A stretch of 64,000 nt of DNA, from sequence record MN794232.1; one strand, given 5' to 3'. Below the pieces are notes generated by a model. It was not told the DNA's origin and made no database searches. It worked only from the letters and a program-made list of their open reading frames with translations. Positions 1-61,380 of this stretch are shown here, in pieces. Position 1 is the first letter of the stretch; every line of letters begins with the position of its first letter. The translations under genes were made by a program, and so were the position numbers.

Positions 1-40
1 ATATTTAGACACACGATATACACATATAGGAAACGGTAAC

Positions 41-973
41 ATGAGTTTAGAGGGTTTCTTCAAACGAAAGACAAAATCGTTTGACGGCTTGCCAGCGGGG
101 GTTAATCTCGTTGACTTCAGTCAGATTGTTTTGAGTACAATCATGGCGACATACAAGCCAACTGACTTGCTTACAGTCGATTTGATTCGGCATATCGTTT
201 TGAACACGCTACGAAGTAACGTGCTTAAAAACAAGATTAAATATCCACGCATCATCTTGTGTATTGATAACGGCAAAGGCGGTTATTGGCGCAAGAAAGA
301 AGCATGGTATTACAAATTCAAGCGTAGTGAACAGCGTGACGAATCTGGTTGGGATTTTGAGACTATTTTCGATGCCATGGCACAAATCAAAGACGAAATA
401 AAGCAGAATATGCCGTATTACGTCATGGACATTGAAGGCGTTGAAGCCGATGACCATATTGGTGTGCTGACTAATTACTACGTGAGCAAAAACGTACCAG
501 TTTTGATTACTTCTTCTGACGGTGACTTTACTCAGTTGCATACAAGCAAACTTGTAAGTCAATGGTCGCCTATTCAGAAGAAGTGGGTCAAGCCAAAACA
601 TGGTTCGCCAGAAATGGACATCATGTATAAGTGCATCAAAGGCGATAAGAAAGACGGAATAGCTCCGTTGAAAGCGCCGAGCGATCACTACACGCATGGC
701 GATGGTCGACGAGCGCCTTCGGTTCGCAAAGAAGAGCTTCGCACGCTCATGACATCAACGCCAGAAGAGCTTAAAAAGCTTTTAACCGACGAGCAGTACG
801 CTCGTTATGAAGAAAACAGAAAATTGTTAGATTTTGCGTTTATCCCTGAACATATCAGTGATAGTATTATCGAACAGTTTGAAACGCAAAAGCCTGCTCC
901 TCGCAGTAAAATCATGATGTATTTCGCTTCTAAGAAGTTAGATAAGCTGATTGAGAGCATGAGCGAATTTTAA
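41..973 (+). CDS. rnh: RNase H / 5'-3' flap exonuclease
   Basis: T4 RNase H motifs: VEADDHIG, SSDGDFTQL, KGDKKDGIA. Confidence 0.95.
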   Translation: MSLEGFFKRKTKSFDGLPAGVNLVDFSQIVLSTIMATYKPTDLLTVDLIRHIVLNTLRSNVLKNKIKYPRIILCIDNGKGGYWRKKEAWYYKFKRSEQRDESGWDFETIFDAMAQIKDEIKQNMPYYVMDIEGVEADDHIGVLTNYYVSKNVPVLITSSDGDFTQLHTSKLVSQWSPIQKKWVKPKHGSPEMDIMYKCIKGDKKDGIAPLKAPSDHYTHGDGRRAPSVRKEELRTLMTSTPEELKKLLTDEQYARYEENRKLLDFAFIPEHISDSIIEQFETQKPAPRSKIMMYFASKKLDKLIESMSEF

Positions 974-980
974 AAAAAAG

Positions 981-1010
981 TGTTTAGAACGAAACGTGCT
1001 GCTGTATAAT
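981..1010 (+). promoter_or_regulatory. Class II sigma70-type promoter (TGTTTAGA ... TATAAT) for dsbA-33-59-32
   Basis: TTTAGA 983-988, 16-nt spacer, TATAAT 1005-1010; the -10 lies in the loop of a 9-bp inverted repeat (995-1003/1012-1020). Confidence 0.75.
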
Positions 1011-1056
1011 GAGCAGCACGAAACAACGACATTGAACAAAACATATTGAGGTAACG

Positions 1057-1329
1057 ATGGACATTCTTGAATACGAAACAATTTCAACTCCGCAAGACAA
1101 GCAAGAAGTAGTTAACATGGTTAAGGAAGCTTCTGCATCTTTGTTGCGTATTGATTCTGAGCGCGATCTTATCAAAGACATTGCAAACCGCGCAAAAGAA
1201 GAATTTGAGATCAAGCCTGCTGATTTCAATAAAGTTGTGAAAATGTATCACAAGCAAAACCGCCAAGAAGAACAGGCGAAGTACGAGAAGATCGACAATC
1301 TATACGAGAAGCTATTTGATGAAGAGTGA
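1057..1329 (+). CDS. dsbA: dsDNA-binding protein DsbA
   Basis: 90 aa, IKDIANRAKEEFEIKPADFNKVVKMYHKQ; T4 synteny rnh-dsbA-33-59-32; RBS GAGGT. Confidence 0.85.
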   Translation: MDILEYETISTPQDKQEVVNMVKEASASLLRIDSERDLIKDIANRAKEEFEIKPADFNKVVKMYHKQNRQEEQAKYEKIDNLYEKLFDEE

Positions 1330-1612
1330 AGACTACGTTCTTAAAGAAGAGCTTGGTGATTTAGTGCCACCTATTAAAGGTAGCCTTAGACAGCAAATCT
1401 CTCTAGAAATTGAAGAGATTTACAATAGCTGTCCCGCCATGACCTATCTTGAAGCGTGTTTATTCTTTATTGAGCAATACGATTACGACATTAGTCGCTT
1501 CCCGTATCTGATTAATCAGACGTTGCGAGACAAAATTGAGACTGAGGCGATAAATGAAAAGACTATTAGAAGTCGATTTGGTTCTGCCTCGGACTTGGGT
1601 CAATGGGTATAG
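1319..1612 (+). CDS. 33: Late transcription co-activator gp33
   Basis: Synteny; TYLEACLFFIEQ...LRDKIETEAINEKTIR resembles the gp33 core. Confidence 0.8.
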   Translation: MKSEDYVLKEELGDLVPPIKGSLRQQISLEIEEIYNSCPAMTYLEACLFFIEQYDYDISRFPYLINQTLRDKIETEAINEKTIRSRFGSASDLGQWV

Positions 1613-2204
1613 CGTATTTCGCGTCTATTGCGCTGTCAAAGCGCATATGGGTGGTAAGTACGACATCTCCAAGTACAAACTCGGGATGAAAACACCTAGA
1701 TCTGCGTTCGAGAAGCGTTCAGATAAGGTGTTTTTTGAACGGCTAGCCAAACGGCTAACATTGAACGATTGCTATCAGTTGCTTGTTAGCAACTTAGCAG
1801 CTAACCCGAACGCTATCTCATACGAGATAGCGGGTGCTGACGCTCATGAATTCTGGCTGAAACATACAGGATTTATGGAAATTTACAGTCAACACTACAA
1901 AAACGAGTTACTTTCGATTTTTACTCTTATAAATAAAGAGAATAAAAAATTCAAAGATTTGTTTAGAGGCGAAGGGCATCCAGTTATAATGCAACTCGTA
2001 TTACGAAACACTATCTCGATTGAGACGTTCGTAATTCTGAATAGACTTTTGAACTTCGTCCCTGTAATCGACAAGACATACAGTGATGACATTTTCTGGC
2101 ACGAGTTCAAGACGCGAGCTTTAGCATACGATAAGTTGCTGAAAATCGACGAAGAACTTGCGAAAGAATTGTTTATTCAAGTAAAAAATCAAAGTAAAAT
2201 ATAA
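1554..2204 (+). CDS. 59: Helicase loader gp59
   Basis: KAHMGGKYDISKY, FEKRSDKVFF, ISIETFVIL match T4 gp59. Confidence 0.92.
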   Translation: MKRLLEVDLVLPRTWVNGYSVFRVYCAVKAHMGGKYDISKYKLGMKTPRSAFEKRSDKVFFERLAKRLTLNDCYQLLVSNLAANPNAISYEIAGADAHEFWLKHTGFMEIYSQHYKNELLSIFTLINKENKKFKDLFRGEGHPVIMQLVLRNTISIETFVILNRLLNFVPVIDKTYSDDIFWHEFKTRALAYDKLLKIDEELAKELFIQVKNQSKI

Positions 2205-2205
2205 A

Positions 2206-2259
2206 ACACAATACGATACAATATCATACTATACTATACAATACAAGGTAATATACAAT
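2206..2259 (+). repeat. Tandem pentamer array in the gene 32 leader (candidate translational operator)
   Basis: ATACG ATACA ATATC ATACT ATACT ATACA ATACA at 2211-2245; nearly G-free, directly before RBS AAGGT and the ATG at 2260. Confidence 0.7.
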
Positions 2260-3171
2260 ATGTCTATGTTCAAACGCAAATCTCCAGCACAACTTCAAGA
2301 AAAACTAGAAAAAATGTCAAGCAAAAAGTCATTTGACAACGCTGACGAGTGGAAACTAACCACTGATAAACTAGGTAACGGTTCTGCGGTGATTCGCTTC
2401 CTTCCTGCAAAAGGCGAAGACGACCTACCATTCGTAAAAATCTTCACTCACGGTTTCAAAGAAAACGGCAACTGGTTCATCGAAAACTGTCCATCGACTA
2501 TCGATCTTCCTTGTCCATGTTGTGCAGCTAACGGCGAGCTTTGGAAAACTGAGAACGAAGACAATCAAAACATTGCGCGTAAACGCAAGCGTACTCTTTC
2601 ATACTGGGCTAATATCGTTGTAATCAAAGATGACGCAGCGCCAGAAAATGAAGGCAAAGTTTTCAAATACCGCTTCGGTAAGAAAATTCTTGACAAGATC
2701 ACTCAAGCTGCTCAAGCAGACGAAGATCTAGGTGTACCGGGCATGGACGTGACTTGTGTATTCGACGGTGCTAACTTCAGCTTGAAAGCTAAGAAAGTAT
2801 CTGGTTTCCCTAACTACGACGACTCTAAATTCGGCCCAAGCACTGAGCTATACGGCGGTGACGAAGCTAAACTTAAAGAAGTTTGGGATGCAATGCACGA
2901 TCTGAACGCAATCATTGCGCCTTCAGCTTTCAAATCAGAAGCTGAACTACAGAAACGCTTCTTGCAAGTGACTGGTGCGGCTCAGCCAAAAGCATCGGCT
3001 GCTCAGAATCTTGAAGCGCAACTGAACACTTCTGCACCTGCTCAAGCAAATGCTCCAAAAGCGGCTGCTAAGCCAGCGGCATCAGTAGACGTTGATCCAG
3101 AGCCAGTAACTGACTCTGTTGACGACGAGCTAGACGCACTGCTTGCTGACCTAGAGCTAGGCGACGATTAA
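2260..3171 (+). CDS. 32: ssDNA-binding protein gp32
   Basis: AVIRFLPA, HGFKENGNWFIENCPST, zinc ligands, YRFGKKI, acidic tail DDELDALLADL. Confidence 0.97.
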   Translation: MSMFKRKSPAQLQEKLEKMSSKKSFDNADEWKLTTDKLGNGSAVIRFLPAKGEDDLPFVKIFTHGFKENGNWFIENCPSTIDLPCPCCAANGELWKTENEDNQNIARKRKRTLSYWANIVVIKDDAAPENEGKVFKYRFGKKILDKITQAAQADEDLGVPGMDVTCVFDGANFSLKAKKVSGFPNYDDSKFGPSTELYGGDEAKLKEVWDAMHDLNAIIAPSAFKSEAELQKRFLQVTGAAQPKASAAQNLEAQLNTSAPAQANAPKAAAKPAASVDVDPEPVTDSVDDELDALLADLELGDD

Positions 3172-3178
3172 TGAATGG

Positions 3179-3200
3179 AAAGGGGCTTAACAGCCCCTTT
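3179..3200 (+). terminator. Intrinsic terminator after gene 32
   Basis: AAAGGGGCT-TAAC-AGCCCCTTT. Confidence 0.8.
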
Positions 3201-3221
3201 GTTCTCTCTATAGGAGATTAA

Positions 3222-3767
3222 ATGAAAGTTCAAATCGTTTTTGCACATGCTATGAGCAAATCACCACATGCCCCTTTTGGCAATCAAAACGCACTCCCTT
3301 GGAAACACAATAAAGAAGACTTAGTACGATTTAAAGCCGCGACAATGAATAGCGTGCTTGTAATGGGTTCTAAGACGTTTGAATCACTACCGGGTAAGTT
3401 GCCCCATCGTCCTCACATTGTGCTTAGTAGCAGCGATACAGCGACGGCTAGAAATGGTCAGCGTGCCGATGTTTACTGTTCGTGTGACGACTTCGGAGCG
3501 TTAATTAAGAACATCGAAAATGTTTATCTTATCGAAGGCTTTGATAAAATAAGTGTTATCGGTGGCCCTAGTGTTATCGAGTCTGCATTACCTTTTGCAG
3601 ACTGCATATATAAAACTACAATCGTTGAAGAAATTGAATCGTACGACGTTACAATTGATTTGACTAAAATATTCTGGCATTTCCCTCACAGAGTGGAATC
3701 AGAGGTCGTTGAATGTCAAAATGGCTCAACGATTTTCATTGAAAAGTTAACAAAGGGTGACTTATGA
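3222..3767 (+). CDS. frd: Dihydrofolate reductase
   Basis: FGNQNALPW, VLVMGSKTFESLP, VIGGPSV. Confidence 0.92.
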   Translation: MKVQIVFAHAMSKSPHAPFGNQNALPWKHNKEDLVRFKAATMNSVLVMGSKTFESLPGKLPHRPHIVLSSSDTATARNGQRADVYCSCDDFGALIKNIENVYLIEGFDKISVIGGPSVIESALPFADCIYKTTIVEEIESYDVTIDLTKIFWHFPHRVESEVVECQNGSTIFIEKLTKGDL

Positions 3768-4483
3768 TTTTTAAGAACAACATTGGATGGTATGCAGGGG
3801 CAGGTTCTGTACGTCATGATTTCTACATCAACGGCCCGATTGAAGAGCCAAGCGATTATGAAGAAATGCTTCAGATTCTACATACCGCGTCTGAAACGGA
3901 CTTGGTGTACTTGCACTTGAACACACCTGGCGGTAACTTTGCTGCTGCTTGTCAAATCTGTGATGCAATCATGCAATCTAAAGCGGGCGCGGTTATTGCG
4001 TGCGCTGAAGGCGAAGTATGTAGCGCAGGTACTATGATTTTCCTTGCTTGTAACGGCTGGCACGTATCGCCATTTGCAACGTTTATGTTCCACACATCTA
4101 GCGGTGGTCAAATCGGTAAAATGCCTGACACGTTGAAACAAGCTAAGGCACATGAAGAGCATCTTAACCGCGTTTGTGGTTTGCTTTACGAGCCGTTCTT
4201 CGATGCTGACGAAATCGACGAGATCATCAACCATAACCAAGACTTGTGGTTGACGCCAGACGAAGTTACTGAGCGTCTACAGCTTATGTCTAAGAAATTT
4301 GAATCAGACATGAAAGAAGCTGAAGAGAAAATTGCTGGTGACATCGAAGCTCAATTAGAAGAGCAAATTGCCGAGCGTGTTGCTGAAGAGCTTCGCAAGC
4401 TGAAAGAAGATCCTGACGACGAAGAAGTTGAAGAGATTGAAGAAAAGCCGAAGCGCAAACGCAAAACTGCGAAAAAAGCCTAG
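3764..4483 (+). CDS. ClpP/crotonase-fold serine protease-like protein
   Basis: LHLNTPGG, EGEVCSAGTMIF (catalytic Ser), FMFH (His), DLWLTPDE; acidic then basic C-tail. Confidence 0.75.
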   Translation: MIFKNNIGWYAGAGSVRHDFYINGPIEEPSDYEEMLQILHTASETDLVYLHLNTPGGNFAAACQICDAIMQSKAGAVIACAEGEVCSAGTMIFLACNGWHVSPFATFMFHTSSGGQIGKMPDTLKQAKAHEEHLNRVCGLLYEPFFDADEIDEIINHNQDLWLTPDEVTERLQLMSKKFESDMKEAEEKIAGDIEAQLEEQIAERVAEELRKLKEDPDDEEVEEIEEKPKRKRKTAKKA

Positions 4484-4503
4484 TTTAGTTTCTGTTGTAA
4501 TTT

Positions 4504-4530
4504 AAGGGGTGGCAATTTGCTGCTCCTTTC
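4504..4530 (+). terminator. Weak terminator-like hairpin before uvsX
   Basis: AAGGGGTGGCA-ATT-TGCTGCTCCTT with several G-U pairs and a short T run. Confidence 0.45.
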
Positions 4531-4549
4531 TTAGTTAAAAGGTAAAATA

Positions 4550-5650
4550 ATGTCAGATTTAATGAAATCACTGAAAAAGTCGAGCACTTCTGGTTACGCG
4601 CAAGTTCTTTCTGAAAGCCAGTTTATGTTTGACAAAGACCACACTCGTACGTATGTACCTGCGATTAACATTGCATTCAGTGGTGAAGTAGATGGTGGCT
4701 TGACTTCAGGGTTAACTGTTCTAGCGGGTCCATCTAAGCACTTTAAATCAAACTTAGGTCTAGTCGGCGTCGCTGCTTATCTGAAGAAGTACCCAGACGC
4801 AGTTTGTGTGTTCATTGATACAGAATTCGGTATTACACCGTCATATTTGCGTTCTCAAGGGGTTGACCCAGACCGTGTTCTTCATATACAATGTGAGAGC
4901 GTTGAGCGTATGAAGTTTGAAATGGCTAATCAGCTTAAAGATCTTGCAGAGCGTAAGCGTGCGAAGAAAGCGGGTGAAGAGCCAGACCGCGTTATCTTCT
5001 TCATTGACTCGGTTGGTAACGTAGCATCAGCAAAAGAAATCGACGACGCTCAAAACGAGAAGTCGGTTGCTGATATGTCACGTGCGAAGCAGTTGAAATC
5101 ATTGTTTCGTATCATCACGCCGTATTTCACAATGCTAGACATTCCTTGTATTGCGATCAACCACACGTATCAGACACAAGAAATCTACTCAAAAACTGTC
5201 ATGTCTGGTGGTACGGGTATCATGTATTCTGCTGATACGGTAATCATTCTTGGTAAGCAACAAGAAAAAGACGGCAAAGACATCATCGGTTATCACTTCA
5301 TCATGAACATCGAGAAATCGCGTTTCGTGAAAGAGAAAATGAAAGTTCCGTTGACTGTTACATACGAAAACGGTATCGACCCGTTCTCTGGTCTTCTTGA
5401 CATTGCTCTTCAGACTGGTCACGTTGTTAAGCCGTCTAACGGATGGTATCAGCGTGCGACTGTTGACGAAGAAACTGGTGAAATGATCGTCGAAGAAAAG
5501 AAATATCGCGCAAAAGAAACGCAGACTATTTCTTTCTGGAAAGACATCATCAATTCGCCTACGTTCAAAGAAGGCGTCAAGCGCATTTACTGCCTCGGTC
5601 AATTAGACGAATCTGAACTATTCGGCGAAGTTGACAGCCTATTCGACTAA
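4550..5650 (+). CDS. uvsX: RecA-like recombinase UvsX
   Basis: LAGPSKHFKS P-loop, FIDTEFG, INHTYQTQEIYSK, MSGGTGIMYSAD. Confidence 0.97.
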   Translation: MSDLMKSLKKSSTSGYAQVLSESQFMFDKDHTRTYVPAINIAFSGEVDGGLTSGLTVLAGPSKHFKSNLGLVGVAAYLKKYPDAVCVFIDTEFGITPSYLRSQGVDPDRVLHIQCESVERMKFEMANQLKDLAERKRAKKAGEEPDRVIFFIDSVGNVASAKEIDDAQNEKSVADMSRAKQLKSLFRIITPYFTMLDIPCIAINHTYQTQEIYSKTVMSGGTGIMYSADTVIILGKQQEKDGKDIIGYHFIMNIEKSRFVKEKMKVPLTVTYENGIDPFSGLLDIALQTGHVVKPSNGWYQRATVDEETGEMIVEEKKYRAKETQTISFWKDIINSPTFKEGVKRIYCLGQLDESELFGEVDSLFD

Positions 5651-5658
5651 TACCCACG

Positions 5659-5687
5659 AGACCCGTTGATTTGTCAGCGGGTCTTTT
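5659..5687 (+). terminator. Intrinsic terminator after uvsX
   Basis: AGACCCGTTGA-TTTG-TCAGCGGGTCT-TTT. Confidence 0.75.
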
Positions 5688-5709
5688 AGCCATTTGAGGA
5701 CGCCAAATT

Positions 5710-6012
5710 ATGTCACCGACTCAAGCTAGTGAAATACTGACTGAACTACAAGAACGAGTGAAATTTAGTATCATGATTGATGATATTGAAGTTTATATCA
5801 CTGATATTATAGTAGATAATAGCGGGAGACTCAAAATTGAATTTGTTACTCAACATCCAGACAAAGAAGATCAAATTCGTCCGCATGTTGAGGCATGTAT
5901 TATGAAACTTATTAGTGAAGAACAAAAACGTAACGGGGTAGAAGAACAATGCAAATCGAGAAGTCGATTTTCTCAAATCTTATCGAAAATCAAGAGTACT
6001 TTGCTACCGTAA
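5710..6012 (+). CDS. 40: Head vertex assembly chaperone gp40
   Basis: Synteny uvsX-40-41; IRPHVEACI resembles T4 gp40 LAPHVEKCI. Confidence 0.65.
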   Translation: MSPTQASEILTELQERVKFSIMIDDIEVYITDIIVDNSGRLKIEFVTQHPDKEDQIRPHVEACIMKLISEEQKRNGVEEQCKSRSRFSQILSKIKSTLLP

Positions 6013-11511: not shown

Positions 11512-11534
11512 AACGTAGTCTATCTGCATGAACA

Positions 11535-11542
11535 TCTAAATA
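11535..11542 (+). promoter_or_regulatory. Late promoter candidate TCTAAATA inside an RBS-occluding hairpin
   Basis: Variant of the T4 late box TATAAATA; flanked by perfect 10-bp inverted repeat 11525-11534/11564-11573. Confidence 0.7.
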
Positions 11543-11575
11543 CTGGTATGGTATTAAAGATGGTGTTCATGCACT

Positions 11576-13732: not shown

Positions 13733-13755
13733 GCCTCGTTTTCGGGGCTTTTTTT
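13733..13755 (+). terminator. Intrinsic terminator
   Basis: GCCTCG-TTTT-CGGGGC plus T7. Confidence 0.75.
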
Positions 13756-13756
13756 A

Positions 13757-13787
13757 TGTTTATCGTATCGTGATGCCGTGTAATAAT
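13757..13787 (+). promoter_or_regulatory. Class II promoter candidate for primase
   Basis: TGTTTATC then imperfect -10 (AATAAT 13782-13787) in the loop of CCGTGT/ACACGG. Confidence 0.5.
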
Positions 13788-13806
13788 AAGACACGGAGGT
13801 TATATT

Positions 13807-16452: not shown

Positions 16453-16481
16453 TTGCGTTGTCGATGTGACTTGTGTAATAT
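16453..16481 (+). promoter_or_regulatory. Class I early promoter within a perfect 14-bp palindrome
   Basis: TTGCGT-17nt-TAATAT; arms 16456-16469/16484-16497. Confidence 0.8.
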
Positions 16482-16513
16482 ACTCACATCGACAACGAAA
16501 AGAGAATATTATT

Positions 16514-16651
16514 ATGACAACGAATCGCCTAGATTGGACAATTGAAAAGAAAGCTCAGTTCATCGCGACATACAAAGACGGGACTGTTTTAGTTGCTCGT
16601 ACTCGCGAAGAACTCAATTCGCAAATCAATGAATTTGAAAAGACGCTATGA
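16514..16651 (+). CDS. Small hypothetical protein (45 aa)
   Basis: ATG after AGAGAATATTATT leader. Confidence 0.65.
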   Translation: MTTNRLDWTIEKKAQFIATYKDGTVLVARTREELNSQINEFEKTL

Positions 16652-20394: not shown

Positions 20395-21155
20395 TGCGTA
20401 TTGTTGTCGGGTCAACTGCGTTGCATCATAATGGTATTCGACTGCGTAAGATCATTAAAGATCTAGATGTATTCGTAGACTCGCCCGAGTCGGCTAACGA
20501 CGGGGATGATTTTATTGTCATGCCCGTCGAGATATTGCAGATGTTCGATGGTGATATAGCAACTGCTGACGAAATCTACACGATTAAGTGCAGTCATCTT
20601 GGTTGGGATGAGCATAAAGTCGGATATAGTCAGTTTGGTGGTTCGACATTGTGGGACAAGCATAAGCGTGATGTTATTGCGCTATCTCGATTCTGCAAAA
20701 TCAAGCCTGAGCTATACGCAGCGTTGACAAATCATTGGCGAAAGGAGCTTGGCAATAAAGAGTATCTGTGCTTGAACAAAGACGCAGACGACTTCTTTAA
20801 TGACAAAGTGAGATACATATATGACCATGATGAGCTTCATCGAATGGTTGCAGCACCAAATCGCCCGTTGTATGAGAAAATTCTCAAAGACGACTGTGAT
20901 GTTTTAGTCAGTAAAGAGAAGTTCGATCAATTGTCATTCGAAGACAAGATTAATTTGTTTCACGAAGAAATTTCAGTGATTGCTATTGAACGATATATTG
21001 TTCATGGTATGATGCCGCTGAATGCGTGGAATCATGCGTTGAAGAAGACAATTACACGGCTGACCAAGAATTGGGCATGTGATTTCATTTGTGCAAACAT
21101 GAGTCATTACATGAAGCCGAAATATAATTTGAATATTCTTGAAGAAAAGGGTTGA
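20394..21155 (+). CDS. Hypothetical protein with nucleotidyltransferase-like N-terminus
   Basis: IVVGSTA...KDLDVF (GS plus DxD). Confidence 0.45.
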   Translation: MRIVVGSTALHHNGIRLRKIIKDLDVFVDSPESANDGDDFIVMPVEILQMFDGDIATADEIYTIKCSHLGWDEHKVGYSQFGGSTLWDKHKRDVIALSRFCKIKPELYAALTNHWRKELGNKEYLCLNKDADDFFNDKVRYIYDHDELHRMVAAPNRPLYEKILKDDCDVLVSKEKFDQLSFEDKINLFHEEISVIAIERYIVHGMMPLNAWNHALKKTITRLTKNWACDFICANMSHYMKPKYNLNILEEKG

Positions 21156-21181
21156 CTTCGGTCAACCCTTTCGCGTATTAT
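21145..21181 (+). promoter_or_regulatory. Fused terminator/early-promoter cassette
   Basis: AAAAGGGTTGAC-TTCG-GTCAACCCTTT; -35 TTGACT is the left arm; TATTAT at 21176. Confidence 0.85.
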
Positions 21182-29141: not shown

Positions 29142-29177
29142 AAAAGGGTTGCAATTCGCAGCCCTTTTTAGTATCAT
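29142..29177 (+). promoter_or_regulatory. Fused terminator/early-promoter cassette
   Basis: AAAAGGGTTGC-AATTC-GCAGCCCTTTTT; TTGCAA-17nt-TATCAT. Confidence 0.8.
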
Positions 29178-31690: not shown

Positions 31691-32572
31691 ATGATTATAT
31701 TCGAAGACATTAATCCGCTTTGTGAAGCATTTGACCGCCCAGCACCTTATAAATGGGATTCTATGTACAACGAAGCTCGATTTACGGTTGGGAACGTGCA
31801 GTATGTCGCGTTTATCAAAGATAATGACACAGCAAGAGGTTTAAGTCTGTATGTGGCATTCCAGCGTCGTGATAACGCAACTGGTCAATGGACTCACTCA
31901 CTTGCTAAAGGCTCGCCGAAAGACGCAATGACGGTATTGAGCACAATACTGGCAGCAACATTTGACAAGGCATCAAAAGTTGAACCGAATGAAATTACAT
32001 TCAGTGCATTTCGTGACGCAGATGACGAAGACGCAAATAAGCGTTTTAGACTGTACAAGCGTATGGCTGAGCGATACGCAAAGCAAATGAATTACACAGT
32101 TCATATCACTGGTAATAGCTTCACACTAACAAACAACAATCCACCTAAGATCAGACGACTCCACAATGACGGCATTCACAAAGAAGATGGACTTACATAC
32201 GTAAATTTCCCTGCTTGTAATGCCTTTACATGGGCGAAGATTTTCTGGCTGGACAATGACGGCGATTACATCAAACTTACATTACCGCACGGTCGTATTC
32301 ACATTGTGAAAAAATCAAGTGACGTAATTGAAATCGAAGCAATTACACCGAAAGGTCGTTTTGACAATCTAGATTCAGATGAGATTTGGATGTCGATGTT
32401 ATCTGATATTAAAGTGAAAGCTAGAGGCGGAAGCACATTTACTATATCAGAGAAAGGCGCGATTTTAGATGCGGGTGATATGATTTTGTGTGAGCAAGGT
32501 ACGTTTTATTACCTAAGTTCTGAAGATGATTTCAAAGAAATCTGGGGATATGAAATCGACTCAATTGAATAA
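31691..32572 (+). CDS. Late hypothetical protein; N-domain shared with ORF 58271
   Basis: MIIFEDINPLCE start; ARF..G...F...A..V.S.(I/V)L...P.E..FSA...R..LY pattern. Confidence 0.8.
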   Translation: MIIFEDINPLCEAFDRPAPYKWDSMYNEARFTVGNVQYVAFIKDNDTARGLSLYVAFQRRDNATGQWTHSLAKGSPKDAMTVLSTILAATFDKASKVEPNEITFSAFRDADDEDANKRFRLYKRMAERYAKQMNYTVHITGNSFTLTNNNPPKIRRLHNDGIHKEDGLTYVNFPACNAFTWAKIFWLDNDGDYIKLTLPHGRIHIVKKSSDVIEIEAITPKGRFDNLDSDEIWMSMLSDIKVKARGGSTFTISEKGAILDAGDMILCEQGTFYYLSSEDDFKEIWGYEIDSIE

Positions 32573-32600
32573 AAAAAGGGAGCAAATTGCTCCCTTTTTT
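32571..32600. terminator. Bidirectional terminator between convergent genes
   Basis: A7-GGGAGC-AAATT-GCTCCC-T6. Confidence 0.9.
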
Positions 32601-34959: not shown

Positions 34960-34995
34960 TCGGGTATTGACAATAACACATCAATACCCGATAAT
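34960..34995 (+). promoter_or_regulatory. Class I early promoter with 11-bp palindrome over the -35/spacer
   Basis: TCGGGTATTGA-10nt-TCAATACCCGA; TTGACA-17nt-GATAAT; conserved leader. Confidence 0.7.
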
Positions 34996-35907: not shown

Positions 35908-35937
35908 AGGTTTGAGGCGGAAAAATTCCGTCTCATC

Positions 35938-35982
35938 TTAGTAGAATTAGTAGTTTTAGTGATATTAGAAGTATTAGTAAGA
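35938..35982 (+). repeat. Five TTAG-headed 9-nt repeats (iteron-like)
   Basis: TTAGTAGAA TTAGTAGTT TTAGTGATA TTAGAAGTA TTAGTAAGA; no C on the + strand. Confidence 0.75.
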
Positions 35983-35984
35983 TT

Positions 35985-36015
35985 TGTTTAACAAACACCT
36001 TGACAGCCGTATAAT
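35985..36015 (+). promoter_or_regulatory. Class II promoter for glutaredoxin-24-55
   Basis: TGTTTAAC, TTTAAC-17nt-TATAAT. Confidence 0.75.
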
Positions 36016-36033
36016 ACACGTCGAGGTGATGAA

Positions 36034-39877: not shown

Positions 39878-39913
39878 AAAAGGGTTGCTTCGGCAACCCT
39901 TTTTGCGTATTAT
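39878..39913 (+). promoter_or_regulatory. Fused terminator/early-promoter cassette
   Basis: AAAAGGGTTGC-TTCG-GCAACCCTTTTT; TTGCTT-17nt-TATTAT. Confidence 0.88.
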
Positions 39914-45971: not shown

Positions 45972-46002
45972 TGTTTAGACCGGCAAATAGCTGTGCTAAT
46001 AT
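45972..46002 (+). promoter_or_regulatory. Class II promoter for 45.2-45-44-62-regA
   Basis: TGTTTAGA, TTTAGA-17nt-TAATAT with extended TGn; -10 in loop of 12-bp stem 45986-45997/46004-46015. Confidence 0.8.
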
Positions 46003-46027
46003 GAGCGCAGCTATTGAGGAAATACAC

Positions 46028-52387: not shown

Positions 52388-52416
52388 TTGACAGTGTGCA
52401 TGAACTAGTGTACACT
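52388..52416 (+). promoter_or_regulatory. sigma70 promoter for rnlA embedded in an inverted repeat
   Basis: TTGACA-17nt-TACACT; arms 52391-52400/52409-52418. Confidence 0.8.
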
Positions 52417-52446
52417 GTTAAAAGACTATTTTGAGAGGAAAAGACA

Positions 52447-54606: not shown

Positions 54607-54642
54607 AAAAGGGTTGCTTCGGCAGCCCTTTTTGCGTATTAT
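54607..54642 (+). promoter_or_regulatory. Fused terminator/early-promoter cassette
   Basis: AAAAGGGTTGC-TTCG-GCAGCCCTTTTT; TTGCTT-17nt-TATTAT; near-identical to the 39878 copy. Confidence 0.88.
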
Positions 54643-59727: not shown

Positions 59728-59766
59728 AAAAAAGGGTTGACAGATGTCAGCCCTTTCGTGTATTCT
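59728..59766 (+). promoter_or_regulatory. Fused terminator/early-promoter cassette
   Basis: AAAGGGTTGAC-AGAT-GTCAGCCCTTT; TTGACA-18nt-TATTCT. Confidence 0.78.
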
Positions 59767-60691: not shown

Positions 60692-60722
60692 TGTTTAATC
60701 TCTCTTGTTTATTGATTATAAT
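60692..60722 (+). promoter_or_regulatory. Class II promoter with -10 in the loop of an RBS hairpin
   Basis: TGTTTAAT, TTTAAT-17nt-TATAAT; arms 60700-60709/60731-60740. Confidence 0.78.
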
Positions 60723-60748
60723 TTAAGCATAACAAGAGAGGTGAACAA

Positions 60749-60964
60749 ATGGGACATTACGATTGCAAAGAATGCGGCACTTTTGGTTGTTTCGGTGAGT
60801 GTCAAGAGCCAGCAAACGTCGAGCGAGAAAAGCAACGTGTAGAGCGTCAAGCACGTGCTGACAAATACGCTGCGATTCTTGAAGCTGAAGAGAGACGAGT
60901 ACGCGACTTAGAAAAAGCACGCGCATTCTTCTTGGTGCACGATAGAAAAGGGAATCCGATTTAA
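60749..60964 (+). CDS. Small Cys-rich (zinc-binding?) protein
   Basis: CKECGTFGCFGEC followed by a charged helix. Confidence 0.7.
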   Translation: MGHYDCKECGTFGCFGECQEPANVEREKQRVERQARADKYAAILEAEERRVRDLEKARAFFLVHDRKGNPI

Positions 60965-61343: not shown

Positions 61344-61380
61344 AAAAAGGGTTGCACAGTGCAGCCCTTTTCTATATCAT
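61344..61380 (+). promoter_or_regulatory. Fused terminator/early-promoter cassette
   Basis: AAAAGGGTTGCA-CAG-TGCAGCCCTTTT; TTGCAC-17nt-TATCAT. Confidence 0.82.

Follow-up and report, generated by a model that had tools for sequence, protein, structure and literature searches.

The stretch of DNA analysed here (the window) comprises bases 1-64000 of Vibrio phage VH1_2019 (MN794232.1; genome 246 kb) and contains the start of the replication and early-gene region, from rnh to beyond gene 43. Its bases 1-6000 were 100% identical to positions 1-6000 of MN794232.1 and 99.3% identical to KVP40. The first ~60 kb of nt-1/KVP40 have been named a hyperplastic region by Comeau et al. 2014 (PMC4122927). 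Rfam returned zero family matches within the 64-kb window, and a literature search found no paper on a KVP40 transcriptome.

An IMG/VR search with DsbA yielded only two close relatives, so the comparison set was instead built from eight whole genomes of the phage collection, namely KVP40, VS1, ValKK3, nt-1, 6E35.1a, 1.081.O, F86, and D479 (73-99% identity). Identity to VH1 was ~90% for VS1, 88% for ValKK3, 85% for nt-1, and 80% for 6E35.1a; around dsbA, the phages 1.081.O, F86, and D479 were all ~74-76% identical. Orthologous cassettes were anchored on the downstream protein, and the 85-130 nt upstream of it were compared.

Hairpins around the -10 boxes of predicted early promoters

Upstream of dsbA lies a predicted early promoter on the plus strand (983-1010) with -35 TTTAGA at 983-988 and -10 TATAAT at 1005-1010, which is preceded by an A-tract and matches the consensus at 10 of 12 positions. 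Both boxes are invariant across the eight related phages, and the spacer outside the hairpin arms is variable. The -10 box sits in the 8-nt loop of a perfect 9-bp palindrome (hairpin S1, 995-1020, plus strand; -16.9 kcal/mol, z = -5.5) whose right arm contains the predicted transcription start at ~1017. A 7-pair core of S1 is invariant or paired in the eight phages, with one compensatory change from G-C to A-U, and KVP40 carries a disrupting G-to-T change. S1, the lead site of the sequence-only reading of the window, is the least informative site in the comparison. A pattern scan also gave a minus-strand terminator at 995-1020, which was rejected because its partial T-run is not conserved in the relatives.

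That reading had reported further palindromes at 13776-13796, 16456-16497, 45986-46015, 52391-52418, and 60700-60740, and all of them were found where it had placed them, with the arm lengths it had given. The first, upstream of gene 61 (primase; 13776-13796, plus strand), is weak with 6 bp. Its right arm extends into the Shine-Dalgarno sequence, and the hairpin is preceded by a canonical terminator at 13733-13748. The relatives retain 7-9 bp at this site, with one compensatory outer pair. The second, hairpin S2 (16456-16497, plus strand), has perfect arms of 14 bp (-23.2 kcal/mol, z = -6.2) and belongs to a predicted early promoter at 16453-16481 (plus strand; -35 TTGCGT at 16453-16458, -10 TAATAT at 16476-16481) in a cassette that is kept in five phages. 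Within S2, a C-G pair has become U-A in nt-1, a compensatory change, and KVP40 has a G-U pair.

Hairpin S4 (45986-46015, plus strand; -18.1 kcal/mol, z = -4.6) pairs over 12 bp with one G-U, adjoins a GAGG ribosome site, and surrounds the -10 box of a predicted early promoter at 45974-46002 (plus strand; -35 TTTAGA at 45974-45979, -10 TAATAT at 45997-46002). Its changes in relatives are from G-U to A-U, with a single C-A mismatch in ValKK3. The KVP40 RefSeq starts of KVP40.0025 (16464) and KVP40.0076 (45975) fall inside promoter and palindrome; better-fitting starts for the homologues of these two genes are the ATGs at 16514 and 46028 of the window, both of which have a ribosome site.

At 52391-52418 the -10 box had been described as lying in the right arm. 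This holds for the full stem of 13 bp, hairpin S5 (52388-52421, plus strand; -18.9 kcal/mol, z = -5.3), which has the -35 box TTGACA in its left arm and the -10 box TACACT (52411-52416) in its right arm, and in which 6E35.1a shows compensatory changes of the inner stem. The palindrome at 60700-60740 is perfect over 10 bp and reaches 12 bp, one G-T included, when extended to 60698-60742 (hairpin S6, plus strand; -16.1 kcal/mol, z = -5.0). Its 21-nt loop holds the -10 box of a predicted early promoter at 60694-60722 (plus strand; -35 TTTAAT at 60694-60699, -10 TATAAT at 60717-60722), and its right arm contains the ribosome site of a 71-aa ORF at 60749-60964.

Our analysis added hairpin S3, which the sequence-only reading did not contain, at the nrdH promoter. 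Here a predicted early promoter (35987-36015, plus strand; -35 TTTAAC at 35987-35992, -10 TATAAT at 36010-36015) overlaps a 9-bp stem with one G-U (35996-36028, plus strand; -12.7 kcal/mol, z = -3.9) whose right arm is the nrdH Shine-Dalgarno sequence. Most changes in the left arm of relatives lead to G-U pairs, and 6E35.1a, F86, and 1.081.O have weaker or shifted stems. Directly upstream of this promoter lies a TTAG-repeat element (window 35913-35991), of which further copies occur at genome 79495 and near 187000 and several in every relative. Three more hairpins are located in the genome outside the window, namely S7 at genome 92254-92291 (-10 at 92272), S8 at 142485-142521 (-10 at 142502), and S9 at 155050-155085 (-10 at 155063). 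A weak 7-bp site on the minus strand at genome 187081 was rejected, since it is not conserved in the relatives and is probably due to chance.

The named sites share a common geometry. An A-rich tract is followed by a -35-like hexamer (TTTAGA, TTGCGT or TTTAAT), a spacing of 16-18 nt, TATAAT or TAATAT, and then a ribosome site and ATG. The left arm lies in the spacer of the sigma-70-type early promoter (~-25 to -13), the -10 box in the loop, and the right arm at the predicted +1 (~-5 to +10), with S5 differing in having its -10 box in the right arm. As had been claimed, the predicted +1, taken as the 7th nucleotide after the -10 box, falls at every site within the right arm or immediately ahead of it. 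Leaders from these cassettes would be 12-40 nt long, with Shine-Dalgarno sequence and start codon at the 3' end of the cassette. The predicted promoters match the nt-1/KVP40 consensus TTGYVH N17 TAWWAT, or its TTTA variant, as given in PMC4122927, and both hexamers are invariant in the relatives. A scan with a generic sigma-70 consensus gave 43 matches compared with 40 in shuffles and thus no enrichment, so that the promoter calls depend on context and conservation.

The predicted RNA folds range from -12.7 to -23.2 kcal/mol with z from -3.9 to -6.2, and none of 200 dinucleotide shuffles was equally stable, with the exception of the gene 61 hairpin (z = -1.6). No plus-strand T-tract follows any of the named sites, in line with the earlier remark that the U-tract of a terminator is missing. 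A G/C-rich hairpin directly followed by a U-tract, as expected of an intrinsic terminator, was not seen at the sites spanning the -10 box, where the downstream sequence is A-rich, and classical intrinsic termination at these hairpins is therefore unlikely.

Enrichment over chance

Perfect stems of at least 8 bp with loops of 3-26 nt numbered 170 in the whole genome, compared with 101 in second-order Markov simulations. Ten of these stems had TAWWAT in the loop (1.6 simulated), and five had in addition a TTK -35 box at 16-18 nt, where 30 second-order Markov simulations gave a mean of 0.23 and a maximum of 1. A count of palindromes flanking -10 boxes against controls had been proposed as a check of the sequence-only reading, and the whole-genome excess over Markov simulations amounts to ~20-fold. 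When G-T and A-C were given equal scores, the count of hairpins anchored to a promoter and enclosing its -10 box was 12 at a score of at least 7 and five at a score of at least 9, compared with 2.4 and 0.2, respectively, in 100 simulations. Since ~2.4 hits are expected at score 7, two or three of the weakest may be chance occurrences.

Across all nine genomes, the centres of the best hairpins near promoter-like sites formed sharp peaks, with 53 between -35 and -10, 41 on the -10 hexamer, and 21 at ~48 nt upstream. A hairpin is present at 22 of the 31 promoter-like sites of VH1; it surrounds the -10 box in six cases and lies between -35 and -10 in eight.

Selection on base pairing

The second check that had been proposed, compensatory covariation in KVP40-like relatives, also came out in favour of the hairpins, as the arms covary and complementarity is kept through sequence change. 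At eight of ten sites, the top hairpin within the 85 nt preceding the gene was the one spanning the -10 box (for S5, the one across -35 and -10) in almost every orthologue, even though the arms are lineage-specific. This does not hold for gene 61, whose upstream terminator ranks first, or for nrdH, where the TTAG-repeat element does so in four relatives. D479, the most distant phage, is without most of the hairpins.

At S8, the arms of VH1, nt-1, 6E35.1a, F86, and 1.081.O are unrelated between the phages, yet within each phage the two arms, 8-14 bp long, are complementary with few or no mismatches. At S6, the arms of F86 are entirely different yet complementary, and the ribosome site is again in the right arm. 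Multiple double changes in the arms were found at S5, S6, S7, and S9. At S9, 98.5% of cells are paired (21-49% in slid controls), four of 11 pairs have changed on both sides, and none of 500 shuffles reached the covariation score. For S7 and S8 together, realignment with a covariance model showed 8 of 11 pairs altered on both sides, again with 0 of 500 shuffles reaching this; here only 68% of cells pair, because bulges shift the lineages and bring the MAFFT columns out of register, and each sequence alone folds well. In an arm-swap test, native combinations of left and right arm scored 6-13, most chimeras between lineages 2-5, and chimeras of closely related lineages 8-9.

Taken together, the alignments show that what is selected across Schizotequatrovirus-like phages is base pairing and not sequence. 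The non-Watson-Crick pairs of 48 distinct hairpins comprised 17 G-T and 9 A-C (p = 0.17), and terminator-like hairpins used as positive control gave a similarly weak bias (144 versus 118).

A leader motif and the predicted accessibility of ribosome sites

In 17 VH1 promoters the motif ATC[GA]AAACGA starts at a fixed distance of 6 nt downstream of the -10 box, with zero hits for the reversed motif as control. Five copies are located in the window (34394, 39920, 54649, 61387, and 63163) and 12 more in the rest of the genome, and the right arm of S2 (16484-16497) holds a variant copy that likewise begins 6 nt after the -10 box. D479 has six copies, the other KVP40-like genomes 13-22, and coliphage phi1 has 12 (reversed control 0-2), and in the KVP40-like genomes nearly all copies are on the predominant gene strand. 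Owing to its fixed distance from the -10 box the motif is probably the 5' end of transcripts, which supports the placement of the predicted +1. A function for it was not found in PMC3014915 or in the available parts of PMC2839356 and PMC4122927.

If transcription starts as predicted, RNA from the promoter itself would begin past the left arm and could not form the stem, and RNA arriving from an upstream promoter would carry both arms and fold the 9-14-bp hairpin. The hairpin would thus mark read-through transcripts only, as the promoter's own RNA lacks the left arm. To estimate the consequences for translation, we calculated the cost of opening the ribosome-site window from -15 to +5 in read-through RNA and in the promoter's own RNA. 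For VH1 the predicted costs were 17.3 versus 1.8 kcal/mol at S6, 11.3 versus 1.0 at nrdH, 9.3 versus 3.3 at S4, 10.1 versus 6.0 at gene 61, and 6.4 versus 1.8 at S5, so that these five window sites have a predicted difference (ddG) of 4-16 kcal/mol. The calculated ddG for individual sites was 15.5-15.8 kcal/mol at S6, 3-12 at S3 in eight phages, 6.0 at S4 in VH1 and 1.7-7.6 in its relatives, and 2.3-7.8 at gene 61 in nine phages. At S1, S2, S7, S8, and S9 there is practically no difference (ddG at most 1.5 kcal/mol); the ribosome site of S1, for example, lies unoccluded 25 nt downstream, with a ddG of 0.1-1.5 kcal/mol. The split between the two groups is mostly preserved in relatives, even where arms have been replaced as at S6 in F86. 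A related arrangement was observed outside the window at genome 81880-81950, where 17 bp pair a promoter spacer with the start-codon region of the downstream gene (predicted opening cost 16.7 versus 1.7 kcal/mol).

At the five sites with overlap, the hairpin is predicted to keep ribosomes from initiating on read-through RNA; expression of the gene would thereby be tied to its own early promoter. At the sites with a free ribosome site (995, 16456, and genome 92272, 142502, and 155063) it would most likely act instead as a transcript boundary, i.e. as an attenuator or pause site or by end protection. The sequence-only reading had suggested an RNA-level switch that is folded by read-through RNA alone. 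Arm covariation and the placement of +1 favour this suggestion, and gating of the ribosome site is predicted at about half of the sites and not at the remainder, to which the reading's own lead site at 995-1020 belongs.

Interpretation and alternatives

PeSL (promoter-early stem-loop) cassettes were defined in phi1/RB49 by Arbiol et al. 2010 (PMC2839356). They begin with an AT-rich tract, followed by a sigma-70 promoter and a stem-loop, and end with the ribosome site and start codon. We propose, with a probability of roughly 0.7, that the sites described here are PeSL-type composite cassettes of KVP40-like phages, of the little-studied positional subclass whose stem-loop bridges the -10 box, and that they comprise a group occluding the ribosome site and a boundary group. 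Geometry, enrichment, selection on pairing, and the link with gene swaps are shown here; we further infer that the hairpins act in RNA rather than in DNA. Among the observations that sit uneasily with this proposal, half of the sites, including 995-1020, have no predicted effect on the ribosome site, and KVP40 tolerates a mismatch at 995-1020.

A more far-reaching version, which we regard as rather unlikely, is that the hairpins around -10 boxes serve a genome-wide discrimination of transcript isoforms of early genes, hiding the ribosome site or, where that is free, the ATC[GA]AAACGA leader. The dosage of early genes would then be controlled individually by each promoter even though terminators are absent, and the leader would be a functional RNA element, acting for example in stability, capping or through a translation factor.

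Among the alternatives, the one that survives best, though we still consider it unlikely, is the proposal of the PeSL authors that all hairpins are terminators or attenuators of upstream transcription; the overlap with ribosome sites would then be incidental and result from packing stem-loop, promoter, and ribosome site into 60-80 bp. Sites 995, 16456, and genome 92272, 142502, and 155063 are without another terminator upstream, the canonical cassettes of the same genome have true terminator hairpins over the -35 box and spacer, and a PeSL stem-loop cut the expression of a lacZ reporter as much as rrnB T1 did, according to PMC2839356. However, none of the stems described here is followed by a U-tract, the sequence downstream being A-rich. 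Judging from the two PeSLs flanking ORF210 in phi1, the only stem-loop shown experimentally to terminate, PeSL211/210 of phi1/RB49, appears moreover to be G/C-rich, to lie between -35 and -10 and thus in a different position, and to be followed by TTATAAT. Incidental overlap is also difficult to reconcile with the wholly changed arms of S6 in F86, which still include the ribosome site, and with a gating energy that is kept in most lineages.

The hairpins could also be selected as structures in DNA, either as cruciforms or as single-strand hairpins during replication or recombination, that tune promoter opening or favour crossover between cassettes. Perfect palindromes fold alike on both strands, gene swaps and indels terminate at or within the cassettes, and a crossover in RB49 was mapped inside the loop of a PeSL stem-loop (PMC2839356). 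G-T pairs, furthermore, are not significantly more common than A-C pairs (see above). Yet we hold this alternative to be quite improbable. Cruciforms are not readily extruded from 9-14-bp arms with loops of 6-21 nt, and with such sizes the cruciform-assisted melting that had been offered by the sequence-only reading is unlikely. Homologous recombination needs identity and not intramolecular complementarity, and therefore leaves the compensatory changes unexplained. The recurrent overlap of right arm and ribosome site, finally, has meaning only in RNA.

That the palindromes are chance occurrences or neutral by-products of repeat turnover fits the ~2.4 weak hits expected per genome and the unconserved site at 187081; for the strong sites it is contradicted by their at least 20-fold enrichment, by folds far better than those of shuffles, and by pairing that is kept via compensatory changes down to 73% identity, and as a general explanation it is highly improbable. 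Least probable of all is that they serve a dimeric regulator of phage or host as operators, which a palindrome centred on the -10 box would resemble in its classical geometry and which had also been put forward earlier, because arm sequences share no consensus between sites and are not conserved between orthologues, only complementarity being retained, as at S8 where they differ in every lineage, and because arm spacing varies from 6 to 21 nt. Change of arm sequence with kept complementarity thus excludes a shared operator and, for the strong sites, chance.

Comparison with known systems

The architecture itself has already been published (PMC2839356 and PMC4122927), and the sequence-only reading, in which the PeSL cassettes were not recognised as such, is largely a rediscovery. 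PMC2839356 distinguishes five subclasses of PeSL by the position of the stem-loop, which in phi1/RB49 is most commonly found in the spacer between -35 and -10 or over the -10 box. A scan of phi1 gave the geometry with the -10 box in the loop at 3180, 41954, 38729, and 36585. PeSLs have also been described from PST/T4 and nt-1/KVP40, where the cassettes were tied to gene shuffling (PMC4122927). The sites described here agree with PeSLs in having an AT-rich tract, a sigma-70-type promoter with an overlapping stem-loop, and then a ribosome site and start codon, and in being numerous in the hyperplastic early region, where they are placed at gene swaps and indels. The cassette at 16456, for instance, is kept as far as the ribosome site, beyond which a different, unrelated gene follows in each of VH1/ValKK3, VS1, and nt-1, and the ORF at 60749-60964 is missing from ValKK3, VS1, and nt-1, with the -10 box as indel junction.

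The only nt-1/KVP40 stem consensus given in the text of PMC4122927 is terminator-like (A3-4 G3, loop, C3 T3-4), and the figure legend, which refers back to that of the PST figure, places the stem-loops just upstream of the promoter. The hairpins around -10 boxes differ from this consensus in having neither a shared arm sequence nor a U-tract. They resemble intrinsic terminators in being stable intergenic hairpins that overlap a promoter, but differ from these and from the canonical cassettes in the missing U-tract, in their larger loops, and in being centred on the -10 box and not ~18 nt upstream. Canonical KVP40-type PeSLs, with the -35 box (TTGAC or TTGC) in the left arm of a terminator hairpin, are located in the window at 21146-21171, 29142-29168, 39878-39903, 54607-54632, 59731-59756, and 61345-61371. 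Many of these share a T-G wobble at the same place, so that the right arm reads GTCAGC and not GTCAAC, which would avoid a mirror -35 box on the opposite strand.

Two other palindromes of the window may be mentioned here. An 11-bp perfect palindrome at 34960-34991, in which TTGACA straddles left arm and loop and which is followed by TAATAA and the leader-like ATCAAGACGA, is probably a further promoter/stem-loop cassette, of the class between -35 and -10. A 13-bp perfect palindrome at 32572-32600, with flanking A- and T-tracts and located between convergent genes, is likely a bidirectional terminator.

When the T4 genes e, soc, 49, and I-TevI are transcribed from upstream, the RNA forms a helix in which the Shine-Dalgarno sequence or AUG is sequestered, and a proximal promoter inside the DNA encoding the 5' strand of the helix gives rise to transcripts that are open and translated (reviewed in PMC3014915). 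Aeh1 mobE is grouped with these translation-initiation hairpins with internal promoter. By predicted folding, the five window sites with ribosome-site overlap resemble this switch. The internal promoter of T4 is however a late one (gp55-type TATAAATA) and the switch is off early and on late, whereas the promoters here are of the early sigma-70 type and no late promoter was found at the sites; in addition, only about half of the sites here touch the ribosome site. A candidate for a hairpin of the T4 kind, with a loop that may hold a late promoter, lies apart from these sites at window 11525-11573. This 12-bp hairpin has TAAATA in the loop, and 2 nt separate its right arm from the ATG of the KVP40.0017 homologue.

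Covariation and occlusion of ribosome sites are not mentioned in the available parts of PMC2839356 or PMC4122927. What the present analysis adds to the known cassettes is the selection on pairing, the placement of stems such that the promoter's own RNA would escape them, and a conserved subset predicted to hide the ribosome site. If confirmed, this would account for the independent expression of early genes that are densely packed and have few terminators, and would give a reason beyond recombination for the retention of the cassettes. The subset predicted to hide the ribosome site would then extend the gating principle of T4 late genes to early promoters.
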